Positions 735 to 58,088 of a stretch of DNA of 64,000 nt are shown here, piece after piece (the stretch's first letter is position 1; every line of letters begins with the position of its first letter). A program made the translations under genes and the position numbers. The stretch is from the IMG/VR virus record IMGVR_UViG_3300042308_001511, positions 62,001-126,000 of that record; one strand, given 5' to 3'. The notes beneath the pieces are model-generated. The model saw nothing but the letters and a program-made list of their open reading frames with translations, was not told where the DNA came from and made no database searches.

Positions 735-1008
735 TTTTTTCGTTTGTTTTTTTATATTCTAACCAAGACTCCAAACTTTCGTAGTCTCTTGATTTACCCG
801 CATCAAATGCTGCATTCAATTCTTTATAATTGTATTTTGGTATCGTCTTTGGTATTTCATAATTGTGGTTTCCATTCGACACAAAAGCTTGAAATAGTTT
901 CATCTCCTCATTATATGGTCCATATTTTTCCTCGTTACGGTTGTTTATTTCGATTACGATTTGGTGTGAAGGATTGTTAGGGTCAAGACCCTCGTTCAAT
1001 TTGCTCAT
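724..1008 (-). CDS. hypothetical protein
   Basis: 94 aa ORF overlapping both neighbours. Confidence 0.65.
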   Translation of the reverse strand: MSKLNEGLDPNNPSHQIVIEINNRNEEKYGPYNEEMKLFQAFVSNGNHNYEIPKTIPKYNYKELNAAFDAGKSRDYESLESWLEYKKTNEKNGN

Positions 1009-1571
1009 ATTATCTCGTTTATTTTTTTGTTTCTTACATATGCCTTAGTCCACTCTTCAAGACTCAACACACCGAAGTCTGGATCCTCCACGTTGTGCTC
1101 ACTACGTACAGGTGATCTAGGCAGCAAAGTAGCATACCTATTTTCCTGGTGTCGTATGTATTTGTCATAGTTTATACAATAACCTTTGTCGGTATTGTTG
1201 TTTTTGTCAGTATCCAATAAAAACTCTAAAACAAATACATCACACGGAATACTCCTAATAAGACGTACATACTCTACAAACGGATAGTCATCTATCAGAT
1301 TGTGTATCATAAGACCTTCAACAAATACAAAAGTGTTAGGTTCCTTCTCTACGAGTTCACGGACTAATGTCAATCTTTTTGAGTCCTCAACTATGTCGGT
1401 TGAAAGAGTGAATTTCCACGTGAACTTCGAGTCAGGATATGGCATAACCTTCTGAACTTCTCTATGTGTGAGAAGAATAGATTGGTAGCCAGAGGTTTCA
1501 AGTCTCTTAGTCATCTCGATAAAAAAATAGGTCTGACTATTTGTGTCAAGCTTTATTAGTGTGTTCGGCAT
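1005..1571 (-). CDS. hypothetical protein with C-terminal RxxxIxxI motif
   Basis: 188 aa, ends YVRNKKINEII; AAAC-N18-TATAAT-N4-ATG upstream. Confidence 0.7.
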   Translation of the reverse strand: MPNTLIKLDTNSQTYFFIEMTKRLETSGYQSILLTHREVQKVMPYPDSKFTWKFTLSTDIVEDSKRLTLVRELVEKEPNTFVFVEGLMIHNLIDDYPFVEYVRLIRSIPCDVFVLEFLLDTDKNNNTDKGYCINYDKYIRHQENRYATLLPRSPVRSEHNVEDPDFGVLSLEEWTKAYVRNKKINEII

Positions 1572-1603
1572 GACTATTATAAAGAGTAATCAACGGTAAG
1601 TTT

Positions 1604-2389
1604 TTAGTAGGGACAATACGGAATCCACTTTTCTTCAAACCAGAAAGTTCTTCCGGTGCTATCCTTTACCCCAACTCCTTTTTGGTAGAATACCCACTCA
1701 GAAAAGTCTTTTACATCACCACCGTTAGGATTATGCCAGTCTCTGAGTTGACCTCCATTATATTTGTATGCTTGTAATGGAATATCACAACACATATCGA
1801 GTATGTCTGGTCTTTTGTTTATAACATCTCTGGCTTTATCGAACGGATTTTCACCTAAGTAATAAAGTATAGTCGAACGAAGATAGTTGCCAATTCCATT
1901 AAAGTATTTCTGATCCAACAACGCCTCACAGATTGGTTTGTCGAATACCTTTTTGTGTAGGTTATTTAGTACATTTTCTTTAAAAACATCAAATTCTTTA
2001 GTCGGATCGGGACCTCTTTTTGTCGCAAATCCACCTACTTTATATTTAGGACCCATATAAGATCCATAAAGAAGTAATGAATATCCATCATCTGTATCGA
2101 GTCGGAAACGAACGAACCTGGTATCGTTCCACTTATCGGTAGTAACGAAAGCCCAGTTACCGGACATACCCATAAAAACGTGTACGTTTATCGATTTGTT
2201 CTCACTGTGTAGTCCTATTATAAGTTCTTTACCGAATGATTCCGCACTAACTATAAAGTCACCTTCTATGATGTTTGATTGTGTTGGTATATTACCTTTG
2301 GTAACGTCATATACCGTAGTGTATTTTCGTTTTTGAGACTTCGAGTTAATGAAGTCTGACATAATTTTCAATTCTGCTAATTCTGGCAT
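1604..2389 (-). CDS. nei: Fpg/Nei-family DNA glycosylase/AP lyase, NEIL1-like
   Basis: N-terminal MPE catalytic motif, GKEL, MGMSG, H2TH motif LLDQKYFNGIGNYLRS, and zincless-finger-type GRTFWF with no 4-Cys finger. Confidence 0.9.
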   Translation of the reverse strand: MPELAELKIMSDFINSKSQKRKYTTVYDVTKGNIPTQSNIIEGDFIVSAESFGKELIIGLHSENKSINVHVFMGMSGNWAFVTTDKWNDTRFVRFRLDTDDGYSLLLYGSYMGPKYKVGGFATKRGPDPTKEFDVFKENVLNNLHKKVFDKPICEALLDQKYFNGIGNYLRSTILYYLGENPFDKARDVINKRPDILDMCCDIPLQAYKYNGGQLRDWHNPNGGDVKDFSEWVFYQKGVGVKDSTGRTFWFEEKWIPYCPY

Positions 2390-2433
2390 GAAATAATCTA
2401 TTAGATTATTTATATACTATAATTAGAATCTGT

Positions 2434-3069
2434 TTAGAACTTATAGTTTTTTGTAGGTTTTCTACACTTCACTTGACTTTTTATATTGTTTAGCTCGGTG
2501 TTTCCAATCTCTAACCTTGCATTTTTTCTTTTTAGTACCAACCCTTCAACCATATCTATTTTAGTTATTTCATCATACTTATCTTTGAATTTATTAAGGT
2601 ATGATTTAACCCGGTATACATTTTCTGATACTGAGTAAAGGTATTCGTGTTCTGATGAATTTACACCAAACATTTCGTCAAGTATGTTAGATCTTTGTTC
2701 AAACGTTTTTGTTATTAGGTAGTCACCATCATTTACGAGTATATCGAATATAACCAGTTTGTGATTGAATGTTTTTCCAGTTCCGTCTCTTTTTGATTTA
2801 TTCATATACTCTCCGTTTATTACGGTCCAACCACCAGTGCCTTTATACAATTTTAGTATTTCTTCACTAGGTATCTCGAATTTCGTAAGAGGTTGTGAGT
2901 GTCTATTCATAACCTTTATATTCTTACCATCTGTAAATATTAAACAATTTGAACCATCCAATTTAGGTTGTCCAAACATTGTGTTGTTATCATATGAGTT
3001 CAAATCCAAAGAAGGTATTGCATTCTTCGGTCTTGGAGGATAGATGTATCTATATACTGGATATTTCAT
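2434..3069 (-). CDS. minimal ATP-dependent ligase (nucleotidyltransferase domain only)
   Basis: Motif I QPKLDG, III NGEY, IIIa FDIL, IV EGLVLK, V VKCRK; no OB domain. Confidence 0.8.
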   Translation of the reverse strand: MKYPVYRYIYPPRPKNAIPSLDLNSYDNNTMFGQPKLDGSNCLIFTDGKNIKVMNRHSQPLTKFEIPSEEILKLYKGTGGWTVINGEYMNKSKRDGTGKTFNHKLVIFDILVNDGDYLITKTFEQRSNILDEMFGVNSSEHEYLYSVSENVYRVKSYLNKFKDKYDEITKIDMVEGLVLKRKNARLEIGNTELNNIKSQVKCRKPTKNYKF

Positions 3070-3965: not shown

Positions 3966-4148
3966 TTAAATTCCGATAGATACCAAAACATCGTTTCTTT
4001 TCTCGGCCTTTGTTTTCTCGACCGGACGAATCTCGTGGTAGCAGTTGATACAATCGCGAACATATTTCTTAGCATCAGATATGCTCTCAAACTCTCCAAA
4101 TCTGAAGAAATTCGTACTCGTTCCGAGCCAAAGTTCACATTTCTTCTT
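3966..4148 (-). CDS. small hypothetical protein with C-terminal RxxxLxxIGI motif
   Basis: Ends EKRNDVLVSIGI; true start probably MAAKKK (ATG near 4157), so the start coordinate is approximate. Confidence 0.55.
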   Translation of the reverse strand, partial: KKKCELWLGTSTNFFRFGEFESISDAKKYVRDCINCYHEIRPVEKTKAEKRNDVLVSIGI

Positions 4149-4159
4149 AGCCGCCATAA

Positions 4160-4351
4160 TCAGAAAGGTAAGTCGTTTTCGATAGGTTTGAAAATACCAC
4201 ATTTAGACTTCAAATGACAATCAATCTTATTGACCTCATCCATATACTGTTGTGCCTTCCAGTCGTCCATCATTCTCAATAAGTCAACCATTTGTTGATC
4301 ATCAATTGGTCTTTCTAATAAATCGTATGCTATGTTATCAATGTTTGTCAT
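4160..4351 (-). CDS. hypothetical protein
   Basis: 63 aa; TATATTCG box upstream. Confidence 0.5.
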   Translation of the reverse strand: MTNIDNIAYDLLERPIDDQQMVDLLRMMDDWKAQQYMDEVNKIDCHLKSKCGIFKPIENDLPF

Positions 4352-5025: not shown

Positions 5026-5028
5026 TAT

Positions 5029-7922: not shown

Positions 7923-8359
7923 AACTTGGATTAGATATACACGGTGTAATAGACAAAAAACCAGAGGACTTTGCTTCTCTGGCTTCTGCCGTTATTTGGA
8001 CCGGAGGTGAGGTACATATAATAACCGGTGGTTCGGTGACCGAAGATATGAAAGAGAAGGTCAAAGCCTTTGGTGTTGCTTGGACACATTTCTTCTCGGT
8101 GTATGATTATATGGAATCTATTGATGAGCAACAAGTTGGTGTTATACAGTTTCCAGATGGGACGGTTCAGAAGAAATTCGATCCTGAAAAATGGGATATG
8201 GTAAAGGCCGATTATTGCAAGAGGAATTCAATAGACCTACACATCGATGATACAGATACATATGGTGTTCATTTCAAAACACCATTTATGTTGTTCTCTG
8301 CAAACGACGGAAGTGAGAAAATATCACACGTCGAGATAATGAAATGTTTATGTCCTTAA
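7919..8359 (+). CDS. HAD-superfamily phosphatase-like protein
   Basis: LGLDIHGVI (atypical motif I), ITG, K, HIDD. Confidence 0.65.
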   Translation: MKLGLDIHGVIDKKPEDFASLASAVIWTGGEVHIITGGSVTEDMKEKVKAFGVAWTHFFSVYDYMESIDEQQVGVIQFPDGTVQKKFDPEKWDMVKADYCKRNSIDLHIDDTDTYGVHFKTPFMLFSANDGSEKISHVEIMKCLCP

Positions 8360-8733
8360 AGAAGTATAAAAAACTGAACAGGAATGAGTCTGGATTGACA
8401 CCGAAGAGGATTGTCGGGCACACTAACATCTGTTACTTTCTCGAGTTCGGTGATGGTATTAGTTACTATGACTACTATTGGTATAATGAAGATGTATCAT
8501 ATTGGGAACCAGATTACTACGACAATGATTTTGAAATACCTGTTTATGTAGAGTGGATCGAAAAACGTGGAGGACGTGTAACAATCGACAAAAGAAAGAT
8601 TGGCTCTTATATACCCGAGGAGGCCTGGTTGGGAAAGGATGGTCGTAGGAATAAGTTGATTGACTCGCTATTCGAGGACGTGCCGAATAATAAAAATACC
8701 ATTGGAAACATAACTGGGTTTGGTGAGAATTAA
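8344..8733 (+). CDS. hypothetical protein with near-C-terminal RxxxIxxL motif
   Basis: GRRNKLIDSLFED. Confidence 0.55.
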   Translation: MFMSLKKYKKLNRNESGLTPKRIVGHTNICYFLEFGDGISYYDYYWYNEDVSYWEPDYYDNDFEIPVYVEWIEKRGGRVTIDKRKIGSYIPEEAWLGKDGRRNKLIDSLFEDVPNNKNTIGNITGFGEN

Positions 8734-9005: not shown

Positions 9006-9284
9006 ATGTATAATGAGGAACAAAAGGAGAGTATATTAAGACTCGCCAATACCATAGACAAATTCCTTACCGACAAAGGAGTCAAGCCCGCATGTCCTAC
9101 GATTGATGCTGAGAAGATTATTGTTGAGAATAAACAACATCTTACCTTCTACGTAAATCCACACAACTTAGGTTGGTACGTCGATAGTCAATTCCGTCGT
9201 GTACATGGCGAGACACTGCTCGTAGACGGAAGTGTAATAGAGACTTCATTGAGGGAAATTGCATTGAATAGTATTGGTATATGA
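9006..9284 (+). CDS. hypothetical protein with C-terminal RxxxLxxIGI motif
   Basis: Ends SLREIALNSIGI. Confidence 0.65.
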   Translation: MYNEEQKESILRLANTIDKFLTDKGVKPACPTIDAEKIIVENKQHLTFYVNPHNLGWYVDSQFRRVHGETLLVDGSVIETSLREIALNSIGI

Positions 9285-10100: not shown

Positions 10101-11327
10101 CTATCCGAAGAAGTCTGCTGCGTCTCCGTCTACGTATCCATCGTTGTTGTCTTCATCATCAGAACCTACAATCTGTTCAAATTCTTTCTCTACTTGCTCA
10201 ATCTCATCGAGTGATTTGAATCTGAAATAATCATTGATAATAGGTGCCATTGAATTTAATACATCTTCTGTGAAAATTTCTGGTGTAAATAATTGTTTGG
10301 TTGTAACTGATTTACCTAAGTGTCTAATATACCATCTCAAGCCACCAGGTGTAAATGTCATCTCACCAGTTTTCTTATCAACTTCCATCTTACCTTTTGC
10401 GATACCGACTTCTTCGAAGAATTCTGGGCGACAGAATCCATCTAAACCAGTGTATGGGTTCATACCATTTACAAAAGAAATATCGAATCTTATTTTCTTT
10501 GGTTTTGCCATACGGTTTTTTGCTGTTTTGAATAAAACGGTAATACCAGATTGTCCTAAATCCATATCATCTTCATTTCCATCTTTAAGTTTCGATTTTG
10601 ACATGAATCCAATTACTGACGCAGAATAAAGTAATCCATTTCCTCCACGTAATTTTTCTTGTGGGTAGAGATCTAAAGTTAGATATGTGTGGTTTGCTAC
10701 AAGTAAAGGAATGTCGAGGTATCCTAAATCTGTGTTTATAGAACGGAACATAGATCCGAGAGCCTTTGCTTTGGTCATATCCTGTTTGATGTCACCTTTC
10801 AATAAATCCTCTTTCTCTTTGTTTGATGCCATCTGTCCTAATGAATCTAAAACTAACATAATTTTAGGTATTTCGTATCCTGCTAACTTCTGTTGTTTGA
10901 GTTCATCAACTAATTGAGTGAGTGTGATATTAACGTCCTCTACTTTGTTCGATCTTATTAGTCTTAGTTTTTCAAGTGAATTATCAACACCAAATTTAGG
11001 AAAGTCTTCAAGGTCAATTGCCTGTTCTGTGTCGATGTAGATGACGAAGTAACCTAACTTCTGTGCCTGCTTAACACATGAGTAACAGAGGAAAGATTTA
11101 CCTGATCCAGATTCACCAGCAAATGCAGTTATACGGTTTGTTGCGATACCACCACCTAATAACTTTCCTGATAGTGCCGCATCGAGGAGGTAAACACCTG
11201 TTGATATGAATGTCTTTTCTTTAATCTCTTTCTCTACAACGATTGGAACTGATTTAGCGATATTATCTAATATTCCTCCTATTTTACTAATCTCAAATTT
11301 TTTTATTTCTTTTGCTTGTTTTGCCAT
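10101..11327 (-). CDS. uvsX: RecA-like recombinase (UvsX type)
   Basis: ISTG, AGESGSGKS Walker A, YIDTE, LVLDS Walker B, VANHTY, GG...YSAS, KNR; acidic tail. Confidence 0.93.
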   Translation of the reverse strand: MAKQAKEIKKFEISKIGGILDNIAKSVPIVVEKEIKEKTFISTGVYLLDAALSGKLLGGGIATNRITAFAGESGSGKSFLCYSCVKQAQKLGYFVIYIDTEQAIDLEDFPKFGVDNSLEKLRLIRSNKVEDVNITLTQLVDELKQQKLAGYEIPKIMLVLDSLGQMASNKEKEDLLKGDIKQDMTKAKALGSMFRSINTDLGYLDIPLLVANHTYLTLDLYPQEKLRGGNGLLYSASVIGFMSKSKLKDGNEDDMDLGQSGITVLFKTAKNRMAKPKKIRFDISFVNGMNPYTGLDGFCRPEFFEEVGIAKGKMEVDKKTGEMTFTPGGLRWYIRHLGKSVTTKQLFTPEIFTEDVLNSMAPIINDYFRFKSLDEIEQVEKEFEQIVGSDDEDNNDGYVDGDAADFFG

Positions 11328-11407
11328 AATAAAATGAACTTTTTTTTTGTATTAATTATACAGTTCGGTAATGGCTTTGTTGATTTAAATAGTTGTGAAT
11401 GTGGTTG

Positions 11408-11935
11408 TTATTTGAGATTGAACTTAGCACCGACCCACGACCAGTTATCTGTGTCTTTCAGGTCTTCGGTGATTTCTGTTTGTGTCGTTTCACCTCTCTC
11501 TGTACCGATAAGGCATTCGAGTTCGATGTTGTCACATTGGTACTTAAGGTACTCCTCAATGCCCTCCATTATAGGCCACAACTCTTTCAGGTCTATACCA
11601 TCGTAATCTTCTGATGTGTCTAATATGATTGCTATGTTCCACTTACTCGCAATTCCTACTAGTGATCTTCTTCCGTCTATCTGTGCAGAGTATGTCTCGT
11701 ACTTAAATCTGTCACCGTTTGGATCAATGTCTTGTAACTGTACCCTTACGAACTCGTCGAGTTCTTCGAGTTGTTCCTGTATCTGTTTCTCCTTCGTCAC
11801 ACGCCAATCTCTGAGTGCGTCGGCCCTCTCGTCTTTATTCGCCTTGTCACTATGTCTCATCTTGTAGGCAGCGTTGGCCAAGGTCTCTGGACTTAGTTCT
11901 TCGTTGAACTTCTGATATCCTTTAAGTTTTCTCAT
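11408..11935 (-). CDS. putative head-internal virion protein
   Basis: Starts MRKLKGYQKFNEE. Confidence 0.6.
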   Translation of the reverse strand: MRKLKGYQKFNEELSPETLANAAYKMRHSDKANKDERADALRDWRVTKEKQIQEQLEELDEFVRVQLQDIDPNGDRFKYETYSAQIDGRRSLVGIASKWNIAIILDTSEDYDGIDLKELWPIMEGIEEYLKYQCDNIELECLIGTERGETTQTEITEDLKDTDNWSWVGAKFNLK

Positions 11936-11936
11936 C

Positions 11937-12383
11937 TTAGTAGTTTCTTTTGTCGTCGCCTCCACCCATATTCGTCAGTCCTATACCGATTAACGTAGAT
12001 ATTATTCCTACTATTACGAATAGTGGTTGGTTGTTAAATCCACCGTATATCATTGATCCCAATCCTCCTAATAATGTGGTTAATATTGATCCAAGTCCCA
12101 GGAAGGCACCTATTTTATCAAGACGTGAACTTTCGTTGATGATGGACTCGCCGATCATCTTCTCTGCCGTCTCAGGGTTCTCTGCCAGTTTGTCGAGTTT
12201 ACTCTTTGCACTTTCAAGCCTTGCTCTTTGTTCTGTTGTTAGCTTCTCTATTTTGTGTGCCACCTCGTCGATTATCTCAGGATTCTCGGATATGTATTCT
12301 TTGGCCATCTCCTGTCCTTTTCTGAAGTTCTCTTTAGCCTTATTGAAGTAGAAGAACTCGTTTATGCTCTTTACGTGTTTCAT
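11937..12383 (-). CDS. putative virion protein with two C-terminal hydrophobic segments
   Basis: Starts MKHVKSINEFF; internal IINES; Gly-rich hydrophobic helices. Confidence 0.65.
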   Translation of the reverse strand: MKHVKSINEFFYFNKAKENFRKGQEMAKEYISENPEIIDEVAHKIEKLTTEQRARLESAKSKLDKLAENPETAEKMIGESIINESSRLDKIGAFLGLGSILTTLLGGLGSMIYGGFNNQPLFVIVGIISTLIGIGLTNMGGGDDKRNY

Positions 12384-12390: not shown

Positions 12391-13257
12391 TTAATTTTTT
12401 TCGTTTATGGACATTATTACCTTTATCGTCAACTTGTTTCCTAGCACACTACTTATTGTACAAGACTCAGTCATCTCTAGCTTGACTTCTGGATACTCGT
12501 CCTGTGTTCGCTGGCATGCTATGTATATCTCCTCTACGAAGTCAGTCCTTTTTTTGAAGTCCTCGTATAAATTCTCGGGTTTTGTGTACGTGACTGATCT
12601 CATACCGTCGTTCACCCACTCGCCGGTTTTTATAGTGAAATTGTAAATGACGGACTTCTTGTAAATAGTTGGTCGGTAATCTCTCGTTACATCGAAACGA
12701 TCTTCTATCTCTGCATCGGACATAAGGTCAGCAAAGGCCATCTCCTGTGGTAGGTAGTCACCATTGGTGAAGTTGGTGAACTTCTCGTCAAATTTCTTTA
12801 TTCTCATAACGTATATATTATTTTGTTTTGATATACTTTCGAATGTCATTATTCTTTCCATAGTGACTCTCGGTTCGACAAAGACGAAGTCCTGTGTACC
12901 TGATTGTACAATTTCCAGTTTGGCACCTGGTTGATTCGGATCTTCCATACAGTACATCAGAGGTCCCCAAGGTCCTTTCACCTTTCCAATCTCGTTACAT
13001 ATCTGCATAAACTCATGCACTATTGGTTCGATACCTTCCAGTTCACCCCAGTTTATTCCAACCATTACCAGTCCATCGCCTTTGTTGTATTGGAACTTCC
13101 TGAGTAGGAACGGTATTACGTTGTATTCCAGGTTGAATCCTTCCAGTTCTCTTTCGAGTGACTCTTGTGTTGCGTTATCCCAGTCTATTAAGGAAACTAT
13201 GGCACCTGTATCTCGTAGTTCCTGTGCTCTTTCGTCTATTTCTTCGATTATGCTCAT
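12391..13257 (-). CDS. putative virion protein(s); probable internal start at 12807
   Basis: In-frame TAATATATA-N4-ATG giving MRIKKFDEKF. Confidence 0.6.
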   Translation of the reverse strand: MSIIEEIDERAQELRDTGAIVSLIDWDNATQESLERELEGFNLEYNVIPFLLRKFQYNKGDGLVMVGINWGELEGIEPIVHEFMQICNEIGKVKGPWGPLMYCMEDPNQPGAKLEIVQSGTQDFVFVEPRVTMERIMTFESISKQNNIYVMRIKKFDEKFTNFTNGDYLPQEMAFADLMSDAEIEDRFDVTRDYRPTIYKKSVIYNFTIKTGEWVNDGMRSVTYTKPENLYEDFKKRTDFVEEIYIACQRTQDEYPEVKLEMTESCTISSVLGNKLTIKVIMSINEKN

Positions 13258-14276
13258 TTCTTACACCATTTTATTGTTATTTCCAGGAAGCCGTCAGGAT
13301 AATTCTTTTGTGCATATTCGAGTACTGCGTAGACGTCATCGCCACTTCTTCCACTTATATTTTCCTGGAACCAGAACTCATTGAACGGATCTGAAAGTAT
13401 AGACAACAGGTTTGACTTACATCTCATCACGTTTATAGAGATCCAGTTACCTTCGTCTTCGAGGGTACGACATGTGTCGATTATCCTTTCTAAAAGGTCG
13501 TTCTCGGAGTGTAGTGTCCAACTAAGATGGTTTACGTCCATTGTCGTCTCGTGTCTGGTGAACGGATTAGTTGGTCTGATTGATATGGCATTTACGTTGT
13601 TATCCAAATTTTTGTCCCAGTGTGATTTTAACTGTTTAACTTCTACTTCTCCTTTGAATTCGTCGAACAATGAAGTGATGTCATTATCATGACTATTGCT
13701 CTCGTTGACGTGCTCCTTCCCGTGCTCCTCGATGAAGTCGTTTATTATGTCCACTATTACCATAGACATGTTCGGCACGTCGTATATGTCTTTGTTGCAG
13801 TCTGCCAGGTTGTTGTCCTCCATATCGTAGACGCTGCCGCTTTCGGATGAGTAGTAGACTATGTCGGTAGCGAAGTTCGATGTGTCTGATGTGAGTTCTA
13901 GTAGGTATCTTTCCATGCTGGTCTCGTTACGGAACTGGTATTCCAATGTCTGTTCGACCGATTCCAGGTCCCAGTTTCCGCTGTCCCATCTGTTTAGTAC
14001 GTATATCTCCTCTGCGGTGCTCTTCCCGGTCACTCCCTTTTTGGTGCCCTTCGGCTTTCTCTGTATAATCACGACGTGCTTGCCCTTGTGATAGTCCTCC
14101 CACTCGTGGATGTCGTCGTTTATGCACCACTGGCATTTGTTTGCGTACTTCCTGAGTGCGGTGTGTGTCAGTGGCATAACGACTATTATGTCATCGTTCC
14201 TGAACACGTCGAGTCTTTCCGACCTCTTCACACGTCCCTCGTTGAGAATCTCACCGTATTTCTTCAGGTATCTCAT
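13254..14276 (-). CDS. putative head-internal virion protein
   Basis: Starts MRYLKKYGEILNEG; internal VNES. Confidence 0.65.
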   Translation of the reverse strand: MRYLKKYGEILNEGRVKRSERLDVFRNDDIIVVMPLTHTALRKYANKCQWCINDDIHEWEDYHKGKHVVIIQRKPKGTKKGVTGKSTAEEIYVLNRWDSGNWDLESVEQTLEYQFRNETSMERYLLELTSDTSNFATDIVYYSSESGSVYDMEDNNLADCNKDIYDVPNMSMVIVDIINDFIEEHGKEHVNESNSHDNDITSLFDEFKGEVEVKQLKSHWDKNLDNNVNAISIRPTNPFTRHETTMDVNHLSWTLHSENDLLERIIDTCRTLEDEGNWISINVMRCKSNLLSILSDPFNEFWFQENISGRSGDDVYAVLEYAQKNYPDGFLEITIKWCKK

Positions 14277-15043
14277 TCTCTCGTCACGAATTTTATGACA
14301 ATCTGCCTGTCTCCTCCTCCTATACTAAGTTTCAGTCCTTCTTCCCAGGCCTCGTCTCTTATTTCTTTCAGTGCCTTCACGTATGCTGCCTGTTGAGGGG
14401 AGCTTACCTCTTCGTGTGTCCCATCTGCAATCTTACTGAGTCTTATTTTAGTACCCCATTCCATATCACTCTGAGATGGCGAGTATCTGAACTCTAACCA
14501 GTTGTCCTTTAATACCGGTCTTTTCTTTTGGTATCCTGCTATGAGGTCCGCCATCCTTTTGAGCCATCCATTGACCTTCGGCATCTTGTCCTCTTTCTTC
14601 TCGATGTCCGGTCCCACAACCACAAACATTAACACGAGTACACCATTATCGTTCTCTATGTTGAAGTTGACGTTGTTGTCGTTCCTGGCGATGTAGAACC
14701 TCTGTACGATTTCTATCGCTTCCTGTAACTTGTCTAGGTCGGTCATACACGTACCAGTGTTGAATGTTAACTGCGACTCGACTTCGTCTATTCCGGTCTC
14801 GTTTGACATGTCGAACTTAAGCTCTACGAGTTTCGCGACAGCGGTTCTGTTAGTACCGAAATTTACACCCTTCTTTATGACTAATCTACCTTCTTTGTAC
14901 ATTCCGTTGTACTCAACGTGACAGTCTGTTATCTTTAGTGTATCGTCGTCTTGGTCGGTGTACTCTGAAAAAAGAAGTCTTATGTCATTCTCGACGTTGT
15001 CCCAATTTTCGGTGGCGGCTTCGTTAAATCTTCTTATCCTCAT
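14273..15043 (-). CDS. putative head-internal virion protein
   Basis: Starts MRIRRFNEA. Confidence 0.65.
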   Translation of the reverse strand: MRIRRFNEAATENWDNVENDIRLLFSEYTDQDDDTLKITDCHVEYNGMYKEGRLVIKKGVNFGTNRTAVAKLVELKFDMSNETGIDEVESQLTFNTGTCMTDLDKLQEAIEIVQRFYIARNDNNVNFNIENDNGVLVLMFVVVGPDIEKKEDKMPKVNGWLKRMADLIAGYQKKRPVLKDNWLEFRYSPSQSDMEWGTKIRLSKIADGTHEEVSSPQQAAYVKALKEIRDEAWEEGLKLSIGGGDRQIVIKFVTRE

Positions 15044-15044
15044 A

Positions 15045-15677
15045 TCATTTTACTGGTTTTCCTGCGGTTATTCTGACCTCGTGGATTCTGACCTCGTGGT
15101 TTGGTTTGTCCTTCAGCTCCCTAACCATCTTCGGTATGTATTTCTTTTCGACTTTTGTCCTCTTCCTGGTCCGCTTAATGATTTTGTCCTCTTCCTTGGT
15201 GACGTTCGTCCAGGTAATCTCGAAGATGTTAGTGAGTCCTTGTTCGTTGAGCATTATAGCGATGGACTGTAGCCTTTCGACGAACTCTTCGCCAATCATT
15301 ATGTAGTTGCCTGTTTTGAGGTCATCGAGTGTGTTTATAGGCCTGTGTGGTGGCCTTATTTCCACGTACAGGATGTTGTTCTTGTCAATCTCAATCTTCT
15401 TCTTTATCTCGTCTCCGAACTCCCACAGAAGCTCCTTCACGTATTGTGCTGCTTGTGCGACATCGTCTGTATTATTAATTGATTCCTCTATTGTTTTTTC
15501 AGCTTCTTCTCTTTCTTTTTGCTCCCTATCGAGTTCCTTTAATCTCATCTTCCTTTGGTCTTCGGCGTCCAGATAATTTCTTAAGTTTATATCCTTTGGT
15601 GTTTCGTTCGTGAAATCTTTTGCAAATTCAGGTGCAAAATTGGTGAAGTCGCTTATTATTCTTTTTTTCTTTCTCAT
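15045..15677 (-). CDS. putative virion protein, first gene of a late operon
   Basis: TATATA-N4-ATG; starts MRKKKRIISDFTNF. Confidence 0.6.
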   Translation of the reverse strand: MRKKKRIISDFTNFAPEFAKDFTNETPKDINLRNYLDAEDQRKMRLKELDREQKEREEAEKTIEESINNTDDVAQAAQYVKELLWEFGDEIKKKIEIDKNNILYVEIRPPHRPINTLDDLKTGNYIMIGEEFVERLQSIAIMLNEQGLTNIFEITWTNVTKEEDKIIKRTRKRTKVEKKYIPKMVRELKDKPNHEVRIHEVRITAGKPVK

Positions 15678-15744
15678 GTAGTATATATAAAAATATCATG
15701 TATTTTTCCTATATTTGTTTTATATTTGTTAAAAAAATAAAAAC

Positions 15745-16026
15745 ATGAAAAAGATTCTGGATTTCGGTAAGTTTGTGGAGATAAACAATTCCAGACTCGA
15801 TGTTATAAAAACAGAGAAGTCGGACGACGAAGTTCGATACGATGTAAGACTTCGTATTAACGAACAAGTTGTAAAGGGCCAGATATTCGTAGATGGACAG
15901 GGTGAACTTGAGTGTTGGCAACTCTATGACTCAGAGGGTAGATGTCTTTCAGAGACATATGGACAAGATAATATAGATAAATTAGTAAATAAAAAAATTA
16001 AAAAGATTAGGAAGAATGAGGCATGA
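15745..16026 (+). CDS. hypothetical protein
   Basis: Starts MKKILDFGKFVE; two TATATTTG boxes upstream. Confidence 0.6.
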   Translation: MKKILDFGKFVEINNSRLDVIKTEKSDDEVRYDVRLRINEQVVKGQIFVDGQGELECWQLYDSEGRCLSETYGQDNIDKLVNKKIKKIRKNEA

Positions 16027-16621
16027 TACTCAGGACATATTTTTCATAAGTGATTTACACGTTGGTCATGCCAATGTTATAAAGTTTGACGGTAGACCAT
16101 TTCAAAACACAGATGAGATGCACGTCGAATTGATAAAAAGGTGGAACTCGGTGGTTGGTTCTGATAGTATTGTTTACTTTTTAGGAGACCTTTCATTTGC
16201 AAGGTCTGGACTTACTAAATGGTTCGTAAGTCAACTAAATGGTAAGATATATGCAATAGCTGGTAACCACGATAAACCGGAAGATTTGAGAAGATTGGAT
16301 CGTTTCGAAGAAGTTTATGATTATGGAACTGAAATTGGTGTTTATGATGAAGATAGTCTTCAATCGAGAGGATCTCAGGGATATCAAAAGATAATAATGG
16401 CACATTATCCAATATTGTCTTGGAACAAAGCACACTATGGTAGTTATATGTTACACGGACATTGCCATGGTGGTTTAGTTAAGACTATGCCAGAATACTA
16501 CAAAAGGAAGGTAATGGATGTGGGTTGTAATATGATTGATTATACACCAATCTCATATTCACAGGTAAAGGAAGTGATGAATAAAAGAGTAATTAGTAAA
16601 GTTGATAATCATGGTGAATGA
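16016..16621 (+). CDS. calcineurin-like metallophosphoesterase
   Basis: SDLH, LGD, GNHD, HYP, HGHCH motifs. Confidence 0.92.
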   Translation: MRHDTQDIFFISDLHVGHANVIKFDGRPFQNTDEMHVELIKRWNSVVGSDSIVYFLGDLSFARSGLTKWFVSQLNGKIYAIAGNHDKPEDLRRLDRFEEVYDYGTEIGVYDEDSLQSRGSQGYQKIIMAHYPILSWNKAHYGSYMLHGHCHGGLVKTMPEYYKRKVMDVGCNMIDYTPISYSQVKEVMNKRVISKVDNHGE

Positions 16622-22912: not shown

Positions 22913-23027
22913 AATAACTCTTTTTTTATGCTAATATAAGTATTAATGCAACATCATGATATACTATTATAATTATCGTGCGTTTTTTTTATTTTATATA
23001 TACCTGTGGTAAAATATTTACAATTTT

Positions 23028-30528: not shown

Positions 30529-30567
30529 ATTTTTCGAAACTATACCTATGTGACAGGTATAATTCAT

Positions 30568-42553: not shown

Positions 42554-42612
42554 AACCTATATATTAACTTAATCTTATATAAAACCATTACGTTATATAG
42601 AATATAACAGTC

Positions 42613-45960: not shown

Positions 45961-48276
45961 ATGAATGTTCAAAAGATAATACAAGTAACTCCGGGTGTAA
46001 TGCAAATACCACCAACAGGATGGGGTGCGGTAGAAAAAATTATATGGGAGTATACTAAATCTCTTCGTTCGGTTGGATATGACGTGGAAATACTTTATAC
46101 AGATGATGTTTCTAATAGTGATAATCAAATTGTACATGTTCATATGGCAAATCTTGCGAATATTCTAAATGAAAGAGGAATTGAATATGTTTTTTCACTA
46201 CACGACCACCACGTAGAACATTTTGGTAAAGACTCTCAATGTTATAAAGATAACTATGATGCTATCAAAAATTCGAAAATTACATTCGTTCACTCACCAC
46301 ATCTTATTGAGTATTTCGATAATATGTCTAACATAGTTTATTTACAACATGGTGTGAACAACGAAGACTACATATTTTTAGATCGTTCGGAGATGGTTCG
46401 TAGGTCTCCTGGTATTGTTATGATGGCTAATAACGGACTCGGTGGTGATTCACTTTATGATAGGAAAGGATTTTTGATTGGAATTGATGCTGCCAATAGG
46501 TTACAACTTCCTATTACTATAATATGTCCAAGTAGTAACCGTGAATTCTTTGAATATCACAAAGTATCTTATGATAAACTTCAGATTATTTACGATTTGA
46601 ATTACGAAGATTCAATTAAAGAGCTTTCTAAACATACATTATTCTTAAATCCTTCGATTATAGAAGCAGGTCATCCTAACCTAACGGTTGTTGAGTCTTT
46701 ATCGTGTGGAATACCTGTTGTTGGTACATCTTATGTAGATGTCCCGGGACTTATTAGATGTAGTAGAGATTTAGAGGATGTAGTTTTGAAAATTGATGAG
46801 TGTCTATTTAAATATGATGGTTTGGTTGAATCTATAAAACAAACTAGAGAATCTTTGTCGTGGAATATTGTTGTCACTAAAATGTTACAATATTATAAAC
46901 GTGTTTATGAAATTTCGGAAAAATCACAATTAGAATGGCAATACAAAAACACAAAAATACTTAGACTACCTAAACAGGAAAAATCAGGAATTCAGGTTGA
47001 TTTCAAAAACGGAAGAACATTTGTTAAAACATCACTACACTCTCAGGGACTCAGTGCAGTTTTCCGTGACAACAAAACCAACTCTATAATATTTGAAACT
47101 ACCATAGGTAAAACTCCGGGTAATTGGGCGTATATGTATACACCGGTTGACCGATTTGTGGATTGGGAGGTTTCTGTTAACTTTGGAACAATTCCTTTAC
47201 ACGTAGAGCGTATGGATCTAAAAAGAAAGAAGGTTCTTGTCACTGGAAATCCTGACATATCATCTTTAGTTGAATTCAGTCTAAAAACTGGTGCATTTTT
47301 GACTCTAAGAGATTTTAAAAACGGATACTTCTGTTACGACCCTGATGCTAATTCGGATGATTTCTATACTGTATTTAATGAACAACAGATTAAAGACTAC
47401 TTCACAATTTGTCCTAGAGTAGTGGATAAGTTACTTCTAAAATCAGGATCTGCGGCACTGGGTGATACAATAGCATTTATACCATATGCACAGAAGTGGG
47501 CAGCCAGTAAAGGTATTGTTGCCGATGTAGATTGTGCTTGGTCTGATATATTTAAATCTACAGAGTATCCAAACCTTTGTTTCGTTGGAAGGGATGTTTC
47601 GATAGAGAACTATTCAAATATTTGGAGATTTGAATATCTATTTGATCGTCCATTACAGAAAGGATACTCGGATCAGTTCGGTTTAGAATATAAAGAGATT
47701 CCTGCAATGATAAGGAAATCAGGTAAAGATAATCCTGTTAATGAAAGATATGTTTGTCTGGGTGTTCAGACTACAACACAGTGTAAGTATTGGAATCGTG
47801 TTGGTGGATGGGATAAACTTTGTGAGATGTTGGAGTCTGAAGGTATAAAAGTTGTTTCGTTGGATAAATATGAAGTTTTTGGAATTGATGGTTATTGGAA
47901 TAGTCTTCCTGAAAAATCCGACAAAAAAGTAGGTATGGAATTCTCCGAGGTTATAAGATATATCGAACATTGTGATGCTTTCATAGGTGTTAGTAGTGGA
48001 TTGGGATGGTTAGCATATGGTCTCGATAAACAAGTGGTTATGATATCCGGAACAACTGTAAAAAATAATGAATTTACTATAAACAACCACCGTGTGTCAC
48101 CACCGGATAATGTTTGTAATGGTTGTTTCAACAAACCACACCTTTATAATTTTGATGCAGGAAACTGGTTATGGTGCCCGGTCTATTCCGGAACTGATAA
48201 AAGGTTTGAGTGTACAACTTCTATTTCACCAGAGATGGTATTCGAGGCGGTTATGGCGGCACTTGGTGAGTCTTAA
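45961..48276 (+). CDS. GT4-like domain fused to autotransporter-heptosyltransferase (TibC/Aah)-like domain
   Basis: IPP.GWGAVE, EAGHPNL; ALGDTIAFIP, KYWN..GW, FIGVSSGLGWLA, CNGC...CP...FECT four-Cys cluster. Confidence 0.8.
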   Translation: MNVQKIIQVTPGVMQIPPTGWGAVEKIIWEYTKSLRSVGYDVEILYTDDVSNSDNQIVHVHMANLANILNERGIEYVFSLHDHHVEHFGKDSQCYKDNYDAIKNSKITFVHSPHLIEYFDNMSNIVYLQHGVNNEDYIFLDRSEMVRRSPGIVMMANNGLGGDSLYDRKGFLIGIDAANRLQLPITIICPSSNREFFEYHKVSYDKLQIIYDLNYEDSIKELSKHTLFLNPSIIEAGHPNLTVVESLSCGIPVVGTSYVDVPGLIRCSRDLEDVVLKIDECLFKYDGLVESIKQTRESLSWNIVVTKMLQYYKRVYEISEKSQLEWQYKNTKILRLPKQEKSGIQVDFKNGRTFVKTSLHSQGLSAVFRDNKTNSIIFETTIGKTPGNWAYMYTPVDRFVDWEVSVNFGTIPLHVERMDLKRKKVLVTGNPDISSLVEFSLKTGAFLTLRDFKNGYFCYDPDANSDDFYTVFNEQQIKDYFTICPRVVDKLLLKSGSAALGDTIAFIPYAQKWAASKGIVADVDCAWSDIFKSTEYPNLCFVGRDVSIENYSNIWRFEYLFDRPLQKGYSDQFGLEYKEIPAMIRKSGKDNPVNERYVCLGVQTTTQCKYWNRVGGWDKLCEMLESEGIKVVSLDKYEVFGIDGYWNSLPEKSDKKVGMEFSEVIRYIEHCDAFIGVSSGLGWLAYGLDKQVVMISGTTVKNNEFTINNHRVSPPDNVCNGCFNKPHLYNFDAGNWLWCPVYSGTDKRFECTTSISPEMVFEAVMAALGES

Positions 48277-48668
48277 ATGTTGAATATGTCGATGATTTCA
48301 TCGTCTAATATCTGATTTAGTGCCAGTTCTCTACTTCTCTGTGTGAATGTCTGTATAAAGGTTAGTTCTATGAATTCGAGTATCAGACCTTCTTCACGTG
48401 ACTTTGTGAATATGGCGGTGAACTCATACTCACCCTCTGGTTGACCTTTTGTGTCTAGGTAGATGTCGTACAATTCCTGTTCGATATCGTTGTCGAACCC
48501 ACTCCATAACCAGAACCAGTCTTTCTGATCCGATTTGAACCCCATATCACCATATCCACCCTTTATAACGTCGCCAATACCCTGCACGACGGTGTATGTC
48601 TTATTGGTCTCTATTATGTCGTGCATCAAATCACGGTAGTGTTCTTCACTCTTTGTCAGTTTCTCCAT
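48273..48668 (-). CDS. hypothetical protein with RExxLxxIL motif
   Basis: RSRELALNQILDD near C-terminus. Confidence 0.65.
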   Translation of the reverse strand: MEKLTKSEEHYRDLMHDIIETNKTYTVVQGIGDVIKGGYGDMGFKSDQKDWFWLWSGFDNDIEQELYDIYLDTKGQPEGEYEFTAIFTKSREEGLILEFIELTFIQTFTQRSRELALNQILDDEIIDIFNI

Positions 48669-56180: not shown

Positions 56181-56672
56181 TTGATGAAAATAAAGATTTA
56201 CCCCGAAGACATAGTACGTAGGTGCTTATGGGACAACTACGTTTACTACATACTCGCTGGTTCCGATAAGGAAGCAGAGAAGATTCTTGCAGAGAATCAA
56301 GAGATGGATATTACAGAAAAGGATGCACTTGTAATTGGACTTTTGAAGGTTATAGAGACTGACAATCTAATACACAAGTTCAACGGATATGTAGTAGAGT
56401 TTCTAACCAATAAATCTATTAAACACACAGATTTACTTTTGGCAAGAAAGAAGACATTTGATACTGCTGTTGATAAATTCCTTGATAAATTTCCAGATTA
56501 TTGGGAGCCAAAGTCTACATATGTGGGTTCTTTGGCGGAATTGGTAGAGTACGTAAACTCAATGAAGACTGATTTAGAATCATTAGAGGTTCATAAAGTA
56601 GTTGATAAAAATGTCACTTATGAATTCTACAATAGTGCTGCAATACGAAAATTATTAAAATTCAATTATTAA
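56181..56672 (+). CDS. hypothetical protein
   Basis: AAAC-N18-TATAAT upstream; heads the grpE-dnaJ operon. Confidence 0.7.
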   Translation: MMKIKIYPEDIVRRCLWDNYVYYILAGSDKEAEKILAENQEMDITEKDALVIGLLKVIETDNLIHKFNGYVVEFLTNKSIKHTDLLLARKKTFDTAVDKFLDKFPDYWEPKSTYVGSLAELVEYVNSMKTDLESLEVHKVVDKNVTYEFYNSAAIRKLLKFNY

Positions 56673-56677
56673 TAAAA

Positions 56678-57217
56678 ATGGAGGATAAAAATAAAATTAG
56701 TGAGGAACTAAAAACCAAAGAAATGAAAATAGATAGTAATACTATTGGACTTGATTTGACTGGTGAAAATGCAACAGAGTTTGTATTAGAAGACAATCCA
56801 ATTGTACATGTTTCTGTATTAGAAGAACAATTAAAAGAAGCAAATAATAAATATATGCTTCTTTATGCAGACTTAGAGAACTACAAAAAGAGAGTCACTA
56901 AGGAAAAAGAAGAAATTAAAAGTAATACAAAGGTTTCTATGTTATCTGCGATATTAGATATGGATAACGACATCGCGTTGGCAATTAAGAATATAAAAGA
57001 TGAAACTGCGAGAGATGGTGTTAGTCTAATTGCCGGAAAATTAGAGAACTTCTTAAAGTTACAAGGTATTGAGCCAATTCAAACTGAGACTTATGACGAA
57101 GATTTACATGAAGTAGTTACTGTTATTGGTGAAGGTAAGAACGTGATTGATGTTATATCAAAAGGATACACACTTTCTGGTAAACCATTCAGATATCCAA
57201 AAATAGTTATTGGGTAA
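56678..57217 (+). CDS. grpE: nucleotide exchange factor GrpE
   Basis: ADLENYKKR..KE, D...HE, KGYTL.G...R...VI. Confidence 0.92.
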   Translation: MEDKNKISEELKTKEMKIDSNTIGLDLTGENATEFVLEDNPIVHVSVLEEQLKEANNKYMLLYADLENYKKRVTKEKEEIKSNTKVSMLSAILDMDNDIALAIKNIKDETARDGVSLIAGKLENFLKLQGIEPIQTETYDEDLHEVVTVIGEGKNVIDVISKGYTLSGKPFRYPKIVIG

Positions 57218-57762
57218 TGAAACAGAGAGCCTACAACACTAGGTTCACTGAAGGATTGAACCATGCTTACTTCATAAATGGTCTTATAACCTCCTATACT
57301 GATAAAGTACAGGATGAAAGTATGCGTGAACAAATTAGTAGAGATCTCGAACATCTGATTGACGAAAGAAGAGAGTTGTTCAAAGAAGGTCCTTTATCCG
57401 GTTATATGCACGAAATTGACGAGGATTCCACTGAGGAGTTCCTCGTCAGATGTGTATATGAAGCTTGGGAAAGTATGGTACTAAATCCACCCGGTTTATT
57501 CCGTATAAACCCAGGTGATACTAGAAGAGAGATGTTATCACTTATGTGGGACGTTGATCACTTTTTAGACACTATTTCTGTGTGGGCAGCAGATGTAGAT
57601 GGTCTGTTAGACCGTTTCGAACACTTAGACAAAACATCTGATACGATGCGTTTAATAACGCAGAATTATGTTAATATGATGATTAAAAAGTGTCAGGGAC
57701 ACACTAAACAAGAGCAGGAAATTATACTAAGAGACTTAAGGATAGAAAAGACACTGAAATGA
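57217..57762 (+). CDS. hypothetical protein with C-terminal RDxRI motif
   Basis: Ends ILRDLRIEKTLK. Confidence 0.65.
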   Translation: MKQRAYNTRFTEGLNHAYFINGLITSYTDKVQDESMREQISRDLEHLIDERRELFKEGPLSGYMHEIDEDSTEEFLVRCVYEAWESMVLNPPGLFRINPGDTRREMLSLMWDVDHFLDTISVWAADVDGLLDRFEHLDKTSDTMRLITQNYVNMMIKKCQGHTKQEQEIILRDLRIEKTLK

Positions 57763-58088
57763 AACTTAGATGGCATTTAGAGATATCACCACACGTAGAT
57801 ACACTAAAATACAGAAAGACCGTTGAGGATTTAGTTGGTCCTATTATGGACTGGTTATGTGAAAGAGTGGTCGAAAATGACCTCACTACATTCGAAAAAG
57901 TAGAGGATCTTTTTAAACAAATAATGGATGAGCTTCCAATAATGCGATTGTTGCGTAGATCCGATTACAACGAACACTACGTCGGACCGGACTTCTTTAT
58001 ACAATACAACAAAAACACCGATATTATCTTTGAAGATAATGTGGCTTGTATACGAAGAGAACTTATAATAGACAACCTACTGAAATGA
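57759..58088 (+). CDS. hypothetical protein with C-terminal RExxIxxLL motif
   Basis: Ends IRRELIIDNLLK. Confidence 0.65.
   Translation: MKLRWHLEISPHVDTLKYRKTVEDLVGPIMDWLCERVVENDLTTFEKVEDLFKQIMDELPIMRLLRRSDYNEHYVGPDFFIQYNKNTDIIFEDNVACIRRELIIDNLLK

Follow-up and report, generated by a model that had tools for sequence, protein, structure and literature searches.

Short, portable recognition motifs placed at the termini of otherwise unrelated proteins have been described in several systems. In phage T4, the C-termini of gp43 (DNA polymerase), gp55 and gp33 carry an epitope that tethers these proteins to the sliding clamp gp45, and these motifs are portable and interchangeable (PMC2988020). The C-terminal degrons of AAA+ proteases, such as the ssrA tag, MuA-type ClpX signals and ClpCP-dependent C-terminal signals like that of SpoIIAB, mark unrelated proteins for one unfoldase; they are short, mostly nonpolar and need the free end. 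A capsid targeting sequence is a conserved short peptide on a diverse, fast-evolving set of phage proteins (PMC3012670). It is N-terminal, belongs to late-expressed proteins and is removed by the prohead protease. PIP boxes and bacterial beta-clamp-binding motifs are often C-terminal, whereas the UVR domain helix is found at the UvrB C-terminus and in the ClpC M-domain. The element analyzed here is a C-terminal helix of 10-14 residues, carried by about one in nine proteins in a 64,000-nucleotide stretch (the window; positions 62,001 to 126,000 of IMG/VR record IMGVR_UViG_3300042308_001511) of a huge phage genome of the Mahaphage clade of T4-like huge phages. No description of this tag was found in the literature, and it looks like an undescribed address or degradation tag on proteins that are, with rare exceptions, not preceded by a late box.

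The initial annotation listed ten full C-terminal R-[NDE]-x-x-[IL]-x-x-[IL] helices on unrelated proteins, and one truncated instance. This observation is confirmed, and the phenomenon is much larger than first noted. All ten full motifs are present, although the coordinates originally given are ORF edges rather than motif positions; the truncated RKKVIEY (ORF 18417-18539) does not score and is not supported. The ten instances, with matrix scores explained below, and the neighboring ClpC are as follows.

1008-1034, minus strand: RNKKINEII at the stop, end of the 188-aa ORF 1005-1571(-); 23.5 bits.
3969-3998, minus strand: RNDVLVSIGI at the stop, end of the 78-aa ORF 3966-4202(-); 14.7 bits.
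8647-8673, plus strand: RNKLIDSLF followed by a 19-aa polar tail, in the 129-aa ORF 8344-8733(+); 11.8 bits; a variant is kept in L006.
9252-9281, plus strand: REIALNSIGI at the stop, end of the 92-aa ORF 9006-9284(+); 11.5 bits; the orthologue in L006 keeps the tag, with substitutions outside the key positions.
18388-18417, plus strand: RERLLRIIGI at the stop, end of the 193-aa ORF 17839-18420(+), which also has hydrophobic N-terminal and central segments; 11.4 bits.
31401-31430, plus strand: RDIKIDQLFE at the stop, end of the 93-aa ORF 31152-31433(+), the second gene upstream of clpC, called as a gene by JGI; 22.2 bits.
31712-31738, plus strand: RDKRIDELF followed by a 19-aa acidic tail, in the 122-aa ORF 31430-31798(+), directly upstream of clpC; 18.9 bits.
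48306-48332, minus strand: RELALNQIL followed by a 10-aa acidic tail, in the 131-aa ORF 48273-48668(-); 17.8 bits.
57730-57759, plus strand: RDLRIEKTLK at the stop, end of the 181-aa ORF 57217-57762(+), just after grpE; 11.2 bits.
58056-58085, plus strand: RELIIDNLLK at the stop, end of the 109-aa ORF 57759-58088(+); 9.1 bits.
31802-33922, plus strand: ClpC without an N-domain (706 aa), a candidate receptor for the tag, inferred and not shown.

A similar motif frequency at internal positions or in shuffled sequences had been put forward beforehand as evidence that would overturn the motif, and neither was observed. In an 89-ORF set from the window, the pattern R[NDE]xx[IL]xx[IL] occurs 6 times within 2 residues of a stop, 3 more times within 25 residues, and 0 times at 17,414 internal positions, while 5,000 per-protein shuffles gave a mean of 0.06 C-terminal hits and a maximum of 2. 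To avoid post hoc bias, a 13-column scoring matrix was trained only on a different genome, the complete 642-kb relative LR756502.1. It assigns 9.1-23.5 bits to the C-terminal zone of exactly these ten ORFs; the next best ORF scores 5.5 bits, and only 1 of 16,969 internal positions reaches 8 bits. Genes were called by a greedy longest-ORF rule rather than a trained gene finder; however, C-termini do not depend on the choice of start codon, and the JGI gene calls agree for the carriers that were checked. The enrichment was likewise to be sought genome-wide and in related huge phages. The tag is found in 121 of 2,164 unique proteins from 90 related loci, with a per-position rate of 0.021 one residue from the end against 0.00011 internally, and in 146 of 995 ORFs of LR756502.1, where it sits 0-6 residues from the stop and is about 100 times enriched.

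The consensus is phi-R-[DNE]-x-K-[LI]-[ND]-x-[IL]-[LG]-x-stop, with Phe also found beside Leu and Gly after the last Ile/Leu. The synonymous codons vary, so that selection acts on the protein. Lys at +3 was not part of the search pattern, yet it is present in 85 of 133 tags. In the family directly upstream of clpC, whose orthologues keep both this position and the tag in many related loci and in LR756502.1, the tag Arg is invariant and the Ile/Leu pair nearly so, at 20-29% overall identity. For the window member of this family, AlphaFold2 predicts a beta domain at residues 3-88, the tag as a helix at residues 91-103, and a disordered tail. The carriers themselves are unrelated: no BLAST hits were obtained among those of the window, no Pfam or PHROG family is shared, and 137 of 146 LR756502.1 carriers have no paralogue once trimmed of the tag.

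These features make it unlikely that the helix lacks a common receptor and is instead an intrinsic stabilizing cap or self-association helix, inherited from one ancient small-protein superfamily whose other parts have diverged beyond recognition. In line with such an origin, carriers are small (median 118 aa) and lie in tandem same-strand arrays (49 adjacent pairs against 18 expected), and one recognizable family (small beta domain plus FxTLAEWRxKQIxxIL) has tandem paralogues and was the main return of the global profile search. On the other hand, conservation stops sharply at about -4, sizes range from 52 to 622 aa, one carrier has a riboflavin-kinase domain, and the lack of detectable paralogues noted above points the same way. 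Furthermore, invariant polar residues are not needed for a generic cap.

The side claims of the initial annotation also hold. Two carriers lie directly upstream of clpC and two lie between grpE and dnaJ, and no carrier in the window has a late-box-like [AT]TATATA within 45 nt upstream (0/10 against 12/79). In LR756502.1, the late box lies upstream of 1/133 carriers against 201/862 other genes (Fisher p = 4e-13), although the clpC operon of this genome, including its tagged neighbor, may itself be read from a late box. No carrier has the N-terminal tag, with 0 overlap among 146 and 57 genes in LR756502.1. This N-terminal tag is of the capsid targeting type and is carried by late genes of the same genomes, whereas the present tag is C-terminal, sits on genes that are not late and never occurs on the same protein.

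The interpretation offered by the initial annotation, a phage-wide short linear motif acting as a degron for the N-domain-less ClpC or as a docking helix for one hub protein, is partly supported. The motif is indeed short, linear and found across the phage, and in fact across the clade, but no function is shown, and the degron reading rests on circumstance only. A phmmer search against the Protein Data Bank aligns residues 35-690 of the phage protein in one stretch to S. aureus ClpC 149-803 (E 6e-214); the short M-domain is present and the ClpP-docking loop reads GTGVGFST, so this is a true ClpC that lacks its N-domain but keeps the VGF loop. Relatives also encode ClpP, and LR756502.1 encodes the same ClpC plus three ClpP-like genes, whereas pattern scans did not find ClpP on the window's own contigs. 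A tagged gene sits directly upstream of clpC across the subclade, and two small LR756502.1 proteins combine a copy of the ClpC M-domain helix with a tag or tag-like end. The UVR helix shares with the tag an Arg-Asp followed by spaced Ile/Leu residues, but, as read by eye from the alignments, its hydrophobic register is shifted by one residue and the preceding FExAA helix is absent from the tag. In contrast, the grpE/dnaJ neighborhood carries no weight, because in LR756502.1 the two genes are adjacent with no carrier between them.

Co-occurrence of the tag with the N-domain-less ClpC had also been proposed as a criterion. Distant relatives whose ClpC keeps its N-domain (825-842 aa) show no tags nearby. 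However, loci with an N-less ClpC at 59-63% identity showed none either, though these loci are mostly large, probably structural genes, and the 735-kb relative LR756501/3 has a Clp ATPase but showed no tags in the 100 kb sampled. Whether LR756504.1, which has a variant tag, encodes a ClpC was not established. As the link rests on neighborhood and co-occurrence within one clade, it is confounded by descent.

Collectively, the analysis itself demonstrates the existence of the tag, its roughly 100-fold enrichment at C-termini, its conservation at the protein and not the DNA level, its status as the best-conserved part of fast-evolving orthologues, its predicted helical fold after the globular domain, and its exclusion of N-terminally tagged genes and, almost without exception, of late-box genes. 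That all carriers present this helix to one shared receptor is an inference, considered likely (about 0.8); the conserved Arg, acidic/amide and Lys residues lie among the hydrophobic positions, as in a docking surface. The most likely reading of the receptor, also inferred and held only tentatively (probability about 0.35), is the phage's own Clp protease. The ClpC has lost the N-domain through which cellular ClpC receives adaptors and phospho-arginine substrates, yet it keeps the loop that docks on ClpP. In this view, the tag would be a built-in docking signal or degron, allowing the phage to remove, or hand to ClpC, its early proteins once they are no longer wanted. No binding or stability data exist, and no complex was predicted. 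About 10% of tags are followed by tails of 10-26 residues, so that, unlike in ssrA-type degrons, the free C-terminus is not strictly required, and conserved polar residues on an amphipathic helix suit a docking site better than a tag pulled in by the pore loops. To our knowledge, no virus has been shown to tag a large part of its own proteome.

An address read by some other receptor, either a phage scaffold or compartment protein or a host hub, remains equally possible, although it too is tentative. The tag would gather early proteins at one place, as the cytoplasmic counterpart of the N-terminal tag of late proteins. The share of the proteome (5-15%) is typical of sorting signals, and the two tags are strictly exclusive and split by expression class. 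The variant also differs between subclades, R[DNE]xK[LI][ND]x[IL][LG] here and R[NE]xIIx[DE]LL at the stop in LR756504.1, as expected if it coevolves with a receptor. The TM-like (hydrophobic-segment) content is similar in carriers and other proteins of like size (8.7% against 12%). No candidate receptor or compartment is known for these phages, and this is an explanation by exclusion.

The main named alternative, a sliding-clamp or replisome binding epitope with which many small proteins would ride on the clamp or compete for it, is considered unlikely. The T4 tails, gp43 KASLDFLFG, gp55 SPSLDFLYEAND and gp33 TNTLDFLL, each at the stop, share with tags such as RIDELFG and KIDQLFE the core hydrophobic-Asp-x-hydrophobic-hydrophobic, the near-terminal position and the optional short acidic tail. 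The phage is T4-like, with UvsX, gp32, gp41, gp44, gp46/47 and gp13 present. The conserved tail of the polymerase C-terminal half, [KR]RLSVVMDIF[GS]G, shares Arg(0), a hydrophobic residue at +4 and Asp-Ile-Phe-Gly-Gly with one tag subfamily, RDKKINDIFGG. Moreover, a small conserved ORF overlapping the end of the late-sigma gene ends in a tag-like RRKEKIQNIF (7-11 bits, about the 95th percentile).

Nevertheless, the two canonical clamp clients do not carry the tag: the polymerase C-half tail scores -7 bits, the median of non-carriers, in about 40 loci, and the gp55-like sigma (PHROG late sigma, E 2e-6) ends in GxGLHSL at the stop in 80 loci. The polymerase N-half and the RNase H homologue also lack it. 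The tag-defining Arg, Asp/Asn/Glu at +1 and Lys at +3 are absent from the T4 epitopes, the tag differs from them in being helical, and under the tag matrix T4 gp43 and gp55 score -9 bits and gp33 scores 0.4. About 146 clients for one phage clamp, rather than three, nearly all with no recognizable family or DNA-related domain, are hard to rationalize, and no clamp gene was identified in the clade. As for the PIP box, the spacing x-x-hydrophobic-x-x-hydrophobic-hydrophobic is the same if Asp/Asn/Glu at +1 is equated with the PIP Gln, but the tag has no Gln and no aromatic pair, and it has a conserved Arg and Lys.

Finally, it is very unlikely that the peptide acts while still inside the ribosome, as a nascent-chain effect on termination or on coupling to the next gene in tightly packed operons. 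The distance to the stop is sharply peaked, with 70 of 146 tags having exactly one residue after the nine-residue core, and carriers overlap the next gene more often than other genes do (53% against 35%). However, this distance still varies from 0 to 26 residues, the motif is a regular amphipathic helix, unlike known arrest peptides, and tight operon packing explains the overlaps.

The 64-kb window, positions 62,001-126,000 of a 344-kb metagenomic contig (JGI 3300042308 Ga0453162_0000001, also catalogued as IMGVR_UViG_3300042308_001511), has 35% G+C and a T4-like gene content. RNA and DNA ligases and thymidylate synthase are found together with gp13, which lies just outside the window, and with the following genes:

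10101-11327 (-), UvsX
40913-41896 (-), gp32
31802-33922, ClpC-like ATPase
56678-57217, GrpE
58659-59705, DnaJ

The DNA polymerase fragment just left of the window is 79% identical to that of two complete uncultured huge phages, LR756502.1 (642 kb) and LR745206.1 (635 kb), 40-42% identical to that of the 636-kb and 735-kb genomes, and 29% identical to that of the Prevotella Lak phages. This is the Mahaphage group of Al-Shayeb et al. 2020 (PMC7162821), which may overlap the "moraphages" described in 2025.

The initial annotation reported ten full copies of a C-terminal R-[NDE]-x-x-[IL]-x-x-[IL] motif on unrelated proteins, and this observation is confirmed: all ten are present, although the positions assigned to them are ORF edges rather than motif positions. 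An eleventh, "truncated" instance (18417-18539) is not supported. A comparable frequency at internal positions or in shuffled sequences had been named in advance as the outcome that would speak against the motif, and it was not observed. In a greedy set of 89 ORFs (20,351 aa), the pattern occurs 6 times within two residues of the stop and 3 more times within 25 residues, but never at 17,414 internal positions, and shuffled proteins give a mean of 0.06. Because the pattern was written after inspection of the data, a 13-column matrix was trained on the tags of a different genome, LR756502.1, and used to scan the window. The ten ORFs score 9.1-23.5 bits and the next ORF 5.5, and only one of 16,969 internal positions reaches 8 bits.

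The search of related huge phages, also proposed beforehand as a check, indicates that the tag is a feature of the whole clade. Thirty-two loci around clpC homologues and 59 loci around the polymerase, retrieved from IMG/VR, contain it on 121 of 2,164 unique ORF products, with a per-position rate of 0.021 one residue from the end against 0.00011 internally; one 22-kb stretch of a 508-kb contig has 14 carriers. In the complete LR756502.1, 146 of 995 ORFs carry the tag, 133 of them with at most six trailing residues and a mode of exactly one. Carriers cluster in same-strand arrays of small genes, especially at 1-20 kb (+) and 585-642 kb (-), with 49 adjacent carrier pairs against 18 expected. 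LR745206.1 and LR756504.1 are also tag-rich genomes. LR756504.1 has a variant, R[NE]xIIx[DE]LL-stop; its first 50 kb (1-50000) holds 151 very small ORFs (median 89 aa), many of which end in [DE]LL-stop or [DE]LI-stop. Two 50-kb samples each of the 735-kb genome and of Lak-A1 show no tags. A global profile search with the alignment of 39 carriers returned only 10 proteins at E <= 0.001, all of 76-99 aa and all matched to their last residues, a 14-residue motif being too short for a significant database-wide census. No description of the tag was found in the searchable literature, and the paper on moraphages, large aquatic Bacteroidota phages with DnaJ/DnaK and a Clp ATPase, does not use the term "C-terminal" at all.

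The logo derived from the 133 terminal tags shows a hydrophobic residue or Lys at -4, a hydrophobic residue at -1, Arg at 0, Asp/Asn/Glu at +1, Lys at +3 (85/133, although it was not in the search pattern), Leu/Ile at +4, Asn/Asp/Lys/Glu/Ser at +5, Ile/Leu at +7, Leu/Gly/Ile/Phe at +8, and often Ile at +9 when +8 is Gly. Conservation falls to background beyond -4. Codons for the same residues differ between copies, so selection acts on the peptide and a repeated DNA or regulatory element at gene ends is rejected. In the family directly upstream of clpC, the tag Arg is invariant and the Ile/Leu pair nearly so, although the proteins are only 20-29% identical. For the 122-aa protein at this position, AlphaFold2, with a ten-sequence alignment (mean pLDDT 75), predicts a beta-rich domain at residues 3-88, the tag as a helix at 91-103, and a disordered extra tail.

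Carriers are small (median 118 aa against 176 for all ORFs) but range from 52 to 622 aa. The descent of all carriers from one paralogous family is rejected, at BLAST-level sensitivity only: the window's carriers have no BLAST similarity to each other, 137 of 146 LR756502.1 carriers have no paralogue in the genome once the tag is trimmed, and in the multiple alignment only the C-terminus aligns. One genuine family exists, a small beta domain followed by FxTLAEWRxKQIxxIL. Searches of Pfam and PHROGs gave nothing shared for the 10 window carriers, for 39 carriers from relatives, or for 20 larger carriers; one carrier has a riboflavin-kinase domain and two are weak P-loop matches. The UVR domain, an FExAAxxRDx[IL]xx[IL] helix-loop-helix, does not account for the tag either, since no Pfam hit was obtained on the 39 carriers and, by eye, the register differs by one residue and the first helix is absent. 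The share of carriers with hydrophobic (TM-like) segments is similar to that of other proteins of like size. None of the recognisable replication, recombination, chaperone or structural proteins in the window carries the tag. LR756502.1 also contains a 44-member paralogous family of ORFs (e.g. 13051-16154(+)) without the C-terminal tag, which was not compared with the genes bearing an N-terminal tag, described next.

The late box of LR756502.1, the octamer AATATATA, or (TT)AATATATA, sits at a fixed 11-15 nt before the start codon in 112 genes and at about -30 in some 60 others, so that late transcripts would have almost no leader. Examples in the window, and the window gene with the N-terminal tag, are:

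28690-28699, late box
42558-42567, late box
22993-23002, late box
15682-15691, late box
18589-18906 (-), gene whose product begins MKYIKLFEEY

The octamer lies within 100 nt upstream of 1 of 133 carriers against 201 of 862 other genes (Fisher p = 4e-13). In the window, 0 of 10 carriers and 12 of 79 other ORFs have a late-box-like site within 45 nt. The tag therefore marks proteins that are not made late. In contrast, the octamer precedes 35 of 57 LR756502.1 genes (61%) whose products begin MK[HY]LKxYKxFES, and this N-terminal tag, of the general form MK[HY][IL]Kx[FY]Kx[FY]E[ST], never occurs on the same protein as the C-terminal tag. The N-terminal tag resembles the T4 capsid targeting sequence and ends in an I/L-x-E site like those cut by the T4 prohead protease, which would suggest that dozens of proteins are packaged into the capsid. 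The C-terminal tag, by its position and its near absence behind the late box, is not a sequence of that type.

Collectively, these findings show a real and statistically overwhelming signal, conserved across a clade of huge phages, which behaves as a short linear motif: a portable C-terminal helix under strong purifying selection on unrelated proteins that are not made late. That it is read by one common partner is inferred, although highly probable, and the identity of that partner is inference as well. The interpretation in the initial annotation, a phage-wide motif serving as a signal for ClpC or as a docking helix for one hub protein, is thus partly supported. Terminal recognition tags are already known as a kind; the sequence of this one, its scale and its pairing with a second, N-terminal tag in the same genomes are new. 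Huge phages carry hundreds of small genes that match no known family, and a tag shared by up to 15% of them is a handle on this dark matter, since it sorts unknown genes into a functional and temporal class from sequence alone and predicts a single receptor that can be fished out with one peptide. Among the candidate receptors, the phage ClpC-ClpP is tentatively preferred (about 0.35), an unidentified receptor is only slightly less likely, the clamp or replisome is unlikely, and the absence of any common receptor is a little less likely still. If the receptor is the clamp or another hub, the tag reveals an unusually large interaction network in a virus. Whether the receptor is the phage's own ClpC-ClpP or such a hub, the tag is short and portable, and could serve as a tool for controlled docking or turnover in Bacteroidota.

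In the preferred reading, the ClpC-ClpP without N-domain acts on the tag as a degron or docking signal. The window protein aligns in a single stretch (residues 35-690) to S. aureus ClpC 149-803 (E 6e-214); it lacks the N-domain, keeps the short M-domain, and has the ClpP-docking loop GTGVGFST. LR756502.1 has the orthologue plus three ClpP-like genes, so that an unfoldase and a peptidase are available in the same system, whereas two pattern scans of the window's own contigs found no ClpP, which leaves its presence in this genome undetermined. A tagged gene is conserved immediately upstream of clpC in the subclade, including LR756502.1. Three small ORFs of LR756502.1 resemble pieces of the phage ClpC:

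381760-382026 (+), 320919-321134 (+) and 154346-154507 (-), two resembling the first M-domain helix and one a D2 segment

Of the two copies of the M-domain helix (YExAAxLRD), one ends in the C-terminal tag and the other in a tag-like sequence. As for co-occurrence with an N-domain-less ClpC, a comparison suggested at the outset, distant relatives whose ClpC keeps the N-domain (825-842 aa) show no tags in the flanking 20 kb, but the 735-kb genome has a Clp ATPase and no tags in the samples, and tblastn searches did not establish whether LR756504.1 encodes a ClpC. All of this evidence is circumstantial and confounded by descent, and protein half-life was not measured. The dependence on a free C-terminus also received a divided answer: there is a strong peak at one trailing residue, yet about 10% of tags are followed by tails of 10-26 residues. 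The most far-reaching form of this reading, which is doubtful but not excluded, is that a huge phage marks a large block of its own early proteome (5-15% of genes) with a built-in degron read directly by a phage-encoded ClpC-ClpP protease that needs no adaptor, and thereby runs its own timed clearance of proteins, separate from host proteolysis and alongside an N-terminal tag that sends late proteins into the capsid. If the receptor is the phage's own ClpC-ClpP, this would be the first case of a virus of bacteria running a proteome-wide degradation programme that it addresses itself, and it would also explain why many jumbo phages carry Clp ATPases without an N-domain.

The neighbourhood of the chaperone genes was examined in the same context. 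A ClpS- or MecA-like adaptor upstream of clpC was considered, but the AlphaFold2 model of the 122-aa protein gave only weak Hcp/tube-like matches (none at E <= 0.001, TM about 0.5). The 200-aa protein before it (30550-31152(+)), conserved two genes upstream of clpC, matches a PHROG "hydrolase" (E 4e-16) and across relatives ends in ...GGEKNVFLRDxL....[KR]LA-stop, a non-polar end reminiscent of ssrA-type tails. The initial annotation also pointed to two carriers between grpE and dnaJ. In the window (56678-59705) four small ORFs, two of them tagged, lie between these genes, but in LR756502.1 the two genes are adjacent with no carrier between them; the link is therefore rejected, and the arrangement looks like a lineage-specific insertion.

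The sliding clamp was considered as a second candidate receptor, since the T4 clamp-binding tails, gp43 ...SLDFLFG-stop, gp55 ...SLDFLYEAND-stop and gp33 ...TLDFLL-stop, are portable and interchangeable (PMC2988020) and, like the tag, lie at or within a few residues of the C-terminus. The tag core [IL]-[ND]-x-[IL]-[LGF] resembles their L-D-F-L-[FYL] core, but under the tag matrix T4 gp43 and gp55 score -9 bits and gp33 scores 0.4, so that the similarity does not settle the matter in either direction. The clade's own clamp clients were therefore inspected:

L007 (locus just left of the window) 10565-12091, LR756502.1 120483-121907 (-) and locus L230, family-B DNA polymerase split into two distant genes, the C-half being at LR756502.1 120483-121907 (-)
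Loci L119-L198, e.g. L143 10001-10366 and 10320-10502, gp55-like late sigma and the ORF overlapping its end

The 508-aa N-half of the polymerase aligns to RB69 gp43 residues 108-492 and ends LDEIKxLExEL-stop in about 50 loci. The C-half, of about 470 aa, carries polymerase motifs B and C, ends ...[KR]RLSVVMDIF[GS]GF in about 40 loci, and scores -7 bits with the tag matrix; the C-half from the same sample as the window lies on a second contig, IMGVR_UViG_3300042308_001616 (249 kb), which is probably the rest of this phage's genome. The gp55-like late sigma (PHROG late sigma, E 2e-6) is truncated to only 121 aa and ends GxGLHSL-stop in 80 loci, and the RNase H homologue has no tag. The canonical clients thus do not carry the tag, which counts against its being a clamp-binding epitope; the clamp gene itself was sought without success, and binding to the clamp was not assayed.

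Two observations keep the clamp idea alive. The polymerase tail shares Arg(0), a hydrophobic residue at +4 and Asp-Ile-Phe-Gly-Gly with one tag subfamily, and a small ORF overlapping the end of the sigma gene ends in a tag-like RRKEKIQNIF. In most loci this conserved ORF of about 60 codons, in the +1 frame, finishes in ...RRKEKIQNIFKIKNPLN-stop and is followed by a terminator-like hairpin. Some loci have CTT TAA at the junction, which resembles a +1 frameshift site, while others have an in-frame ATG, so it could be either a separate small gene or a frameshift extension. Acidic-aromatic tails like that of the polymerase, and not the tag, are found on UvsX (...DGDAADFFG-stop), on gp32 (...EEDDFFSDF-stop) and on a 170-aa ORF at 222-734(-) (...DYYDCDF-stop), and these may form a separate replisome docking code.
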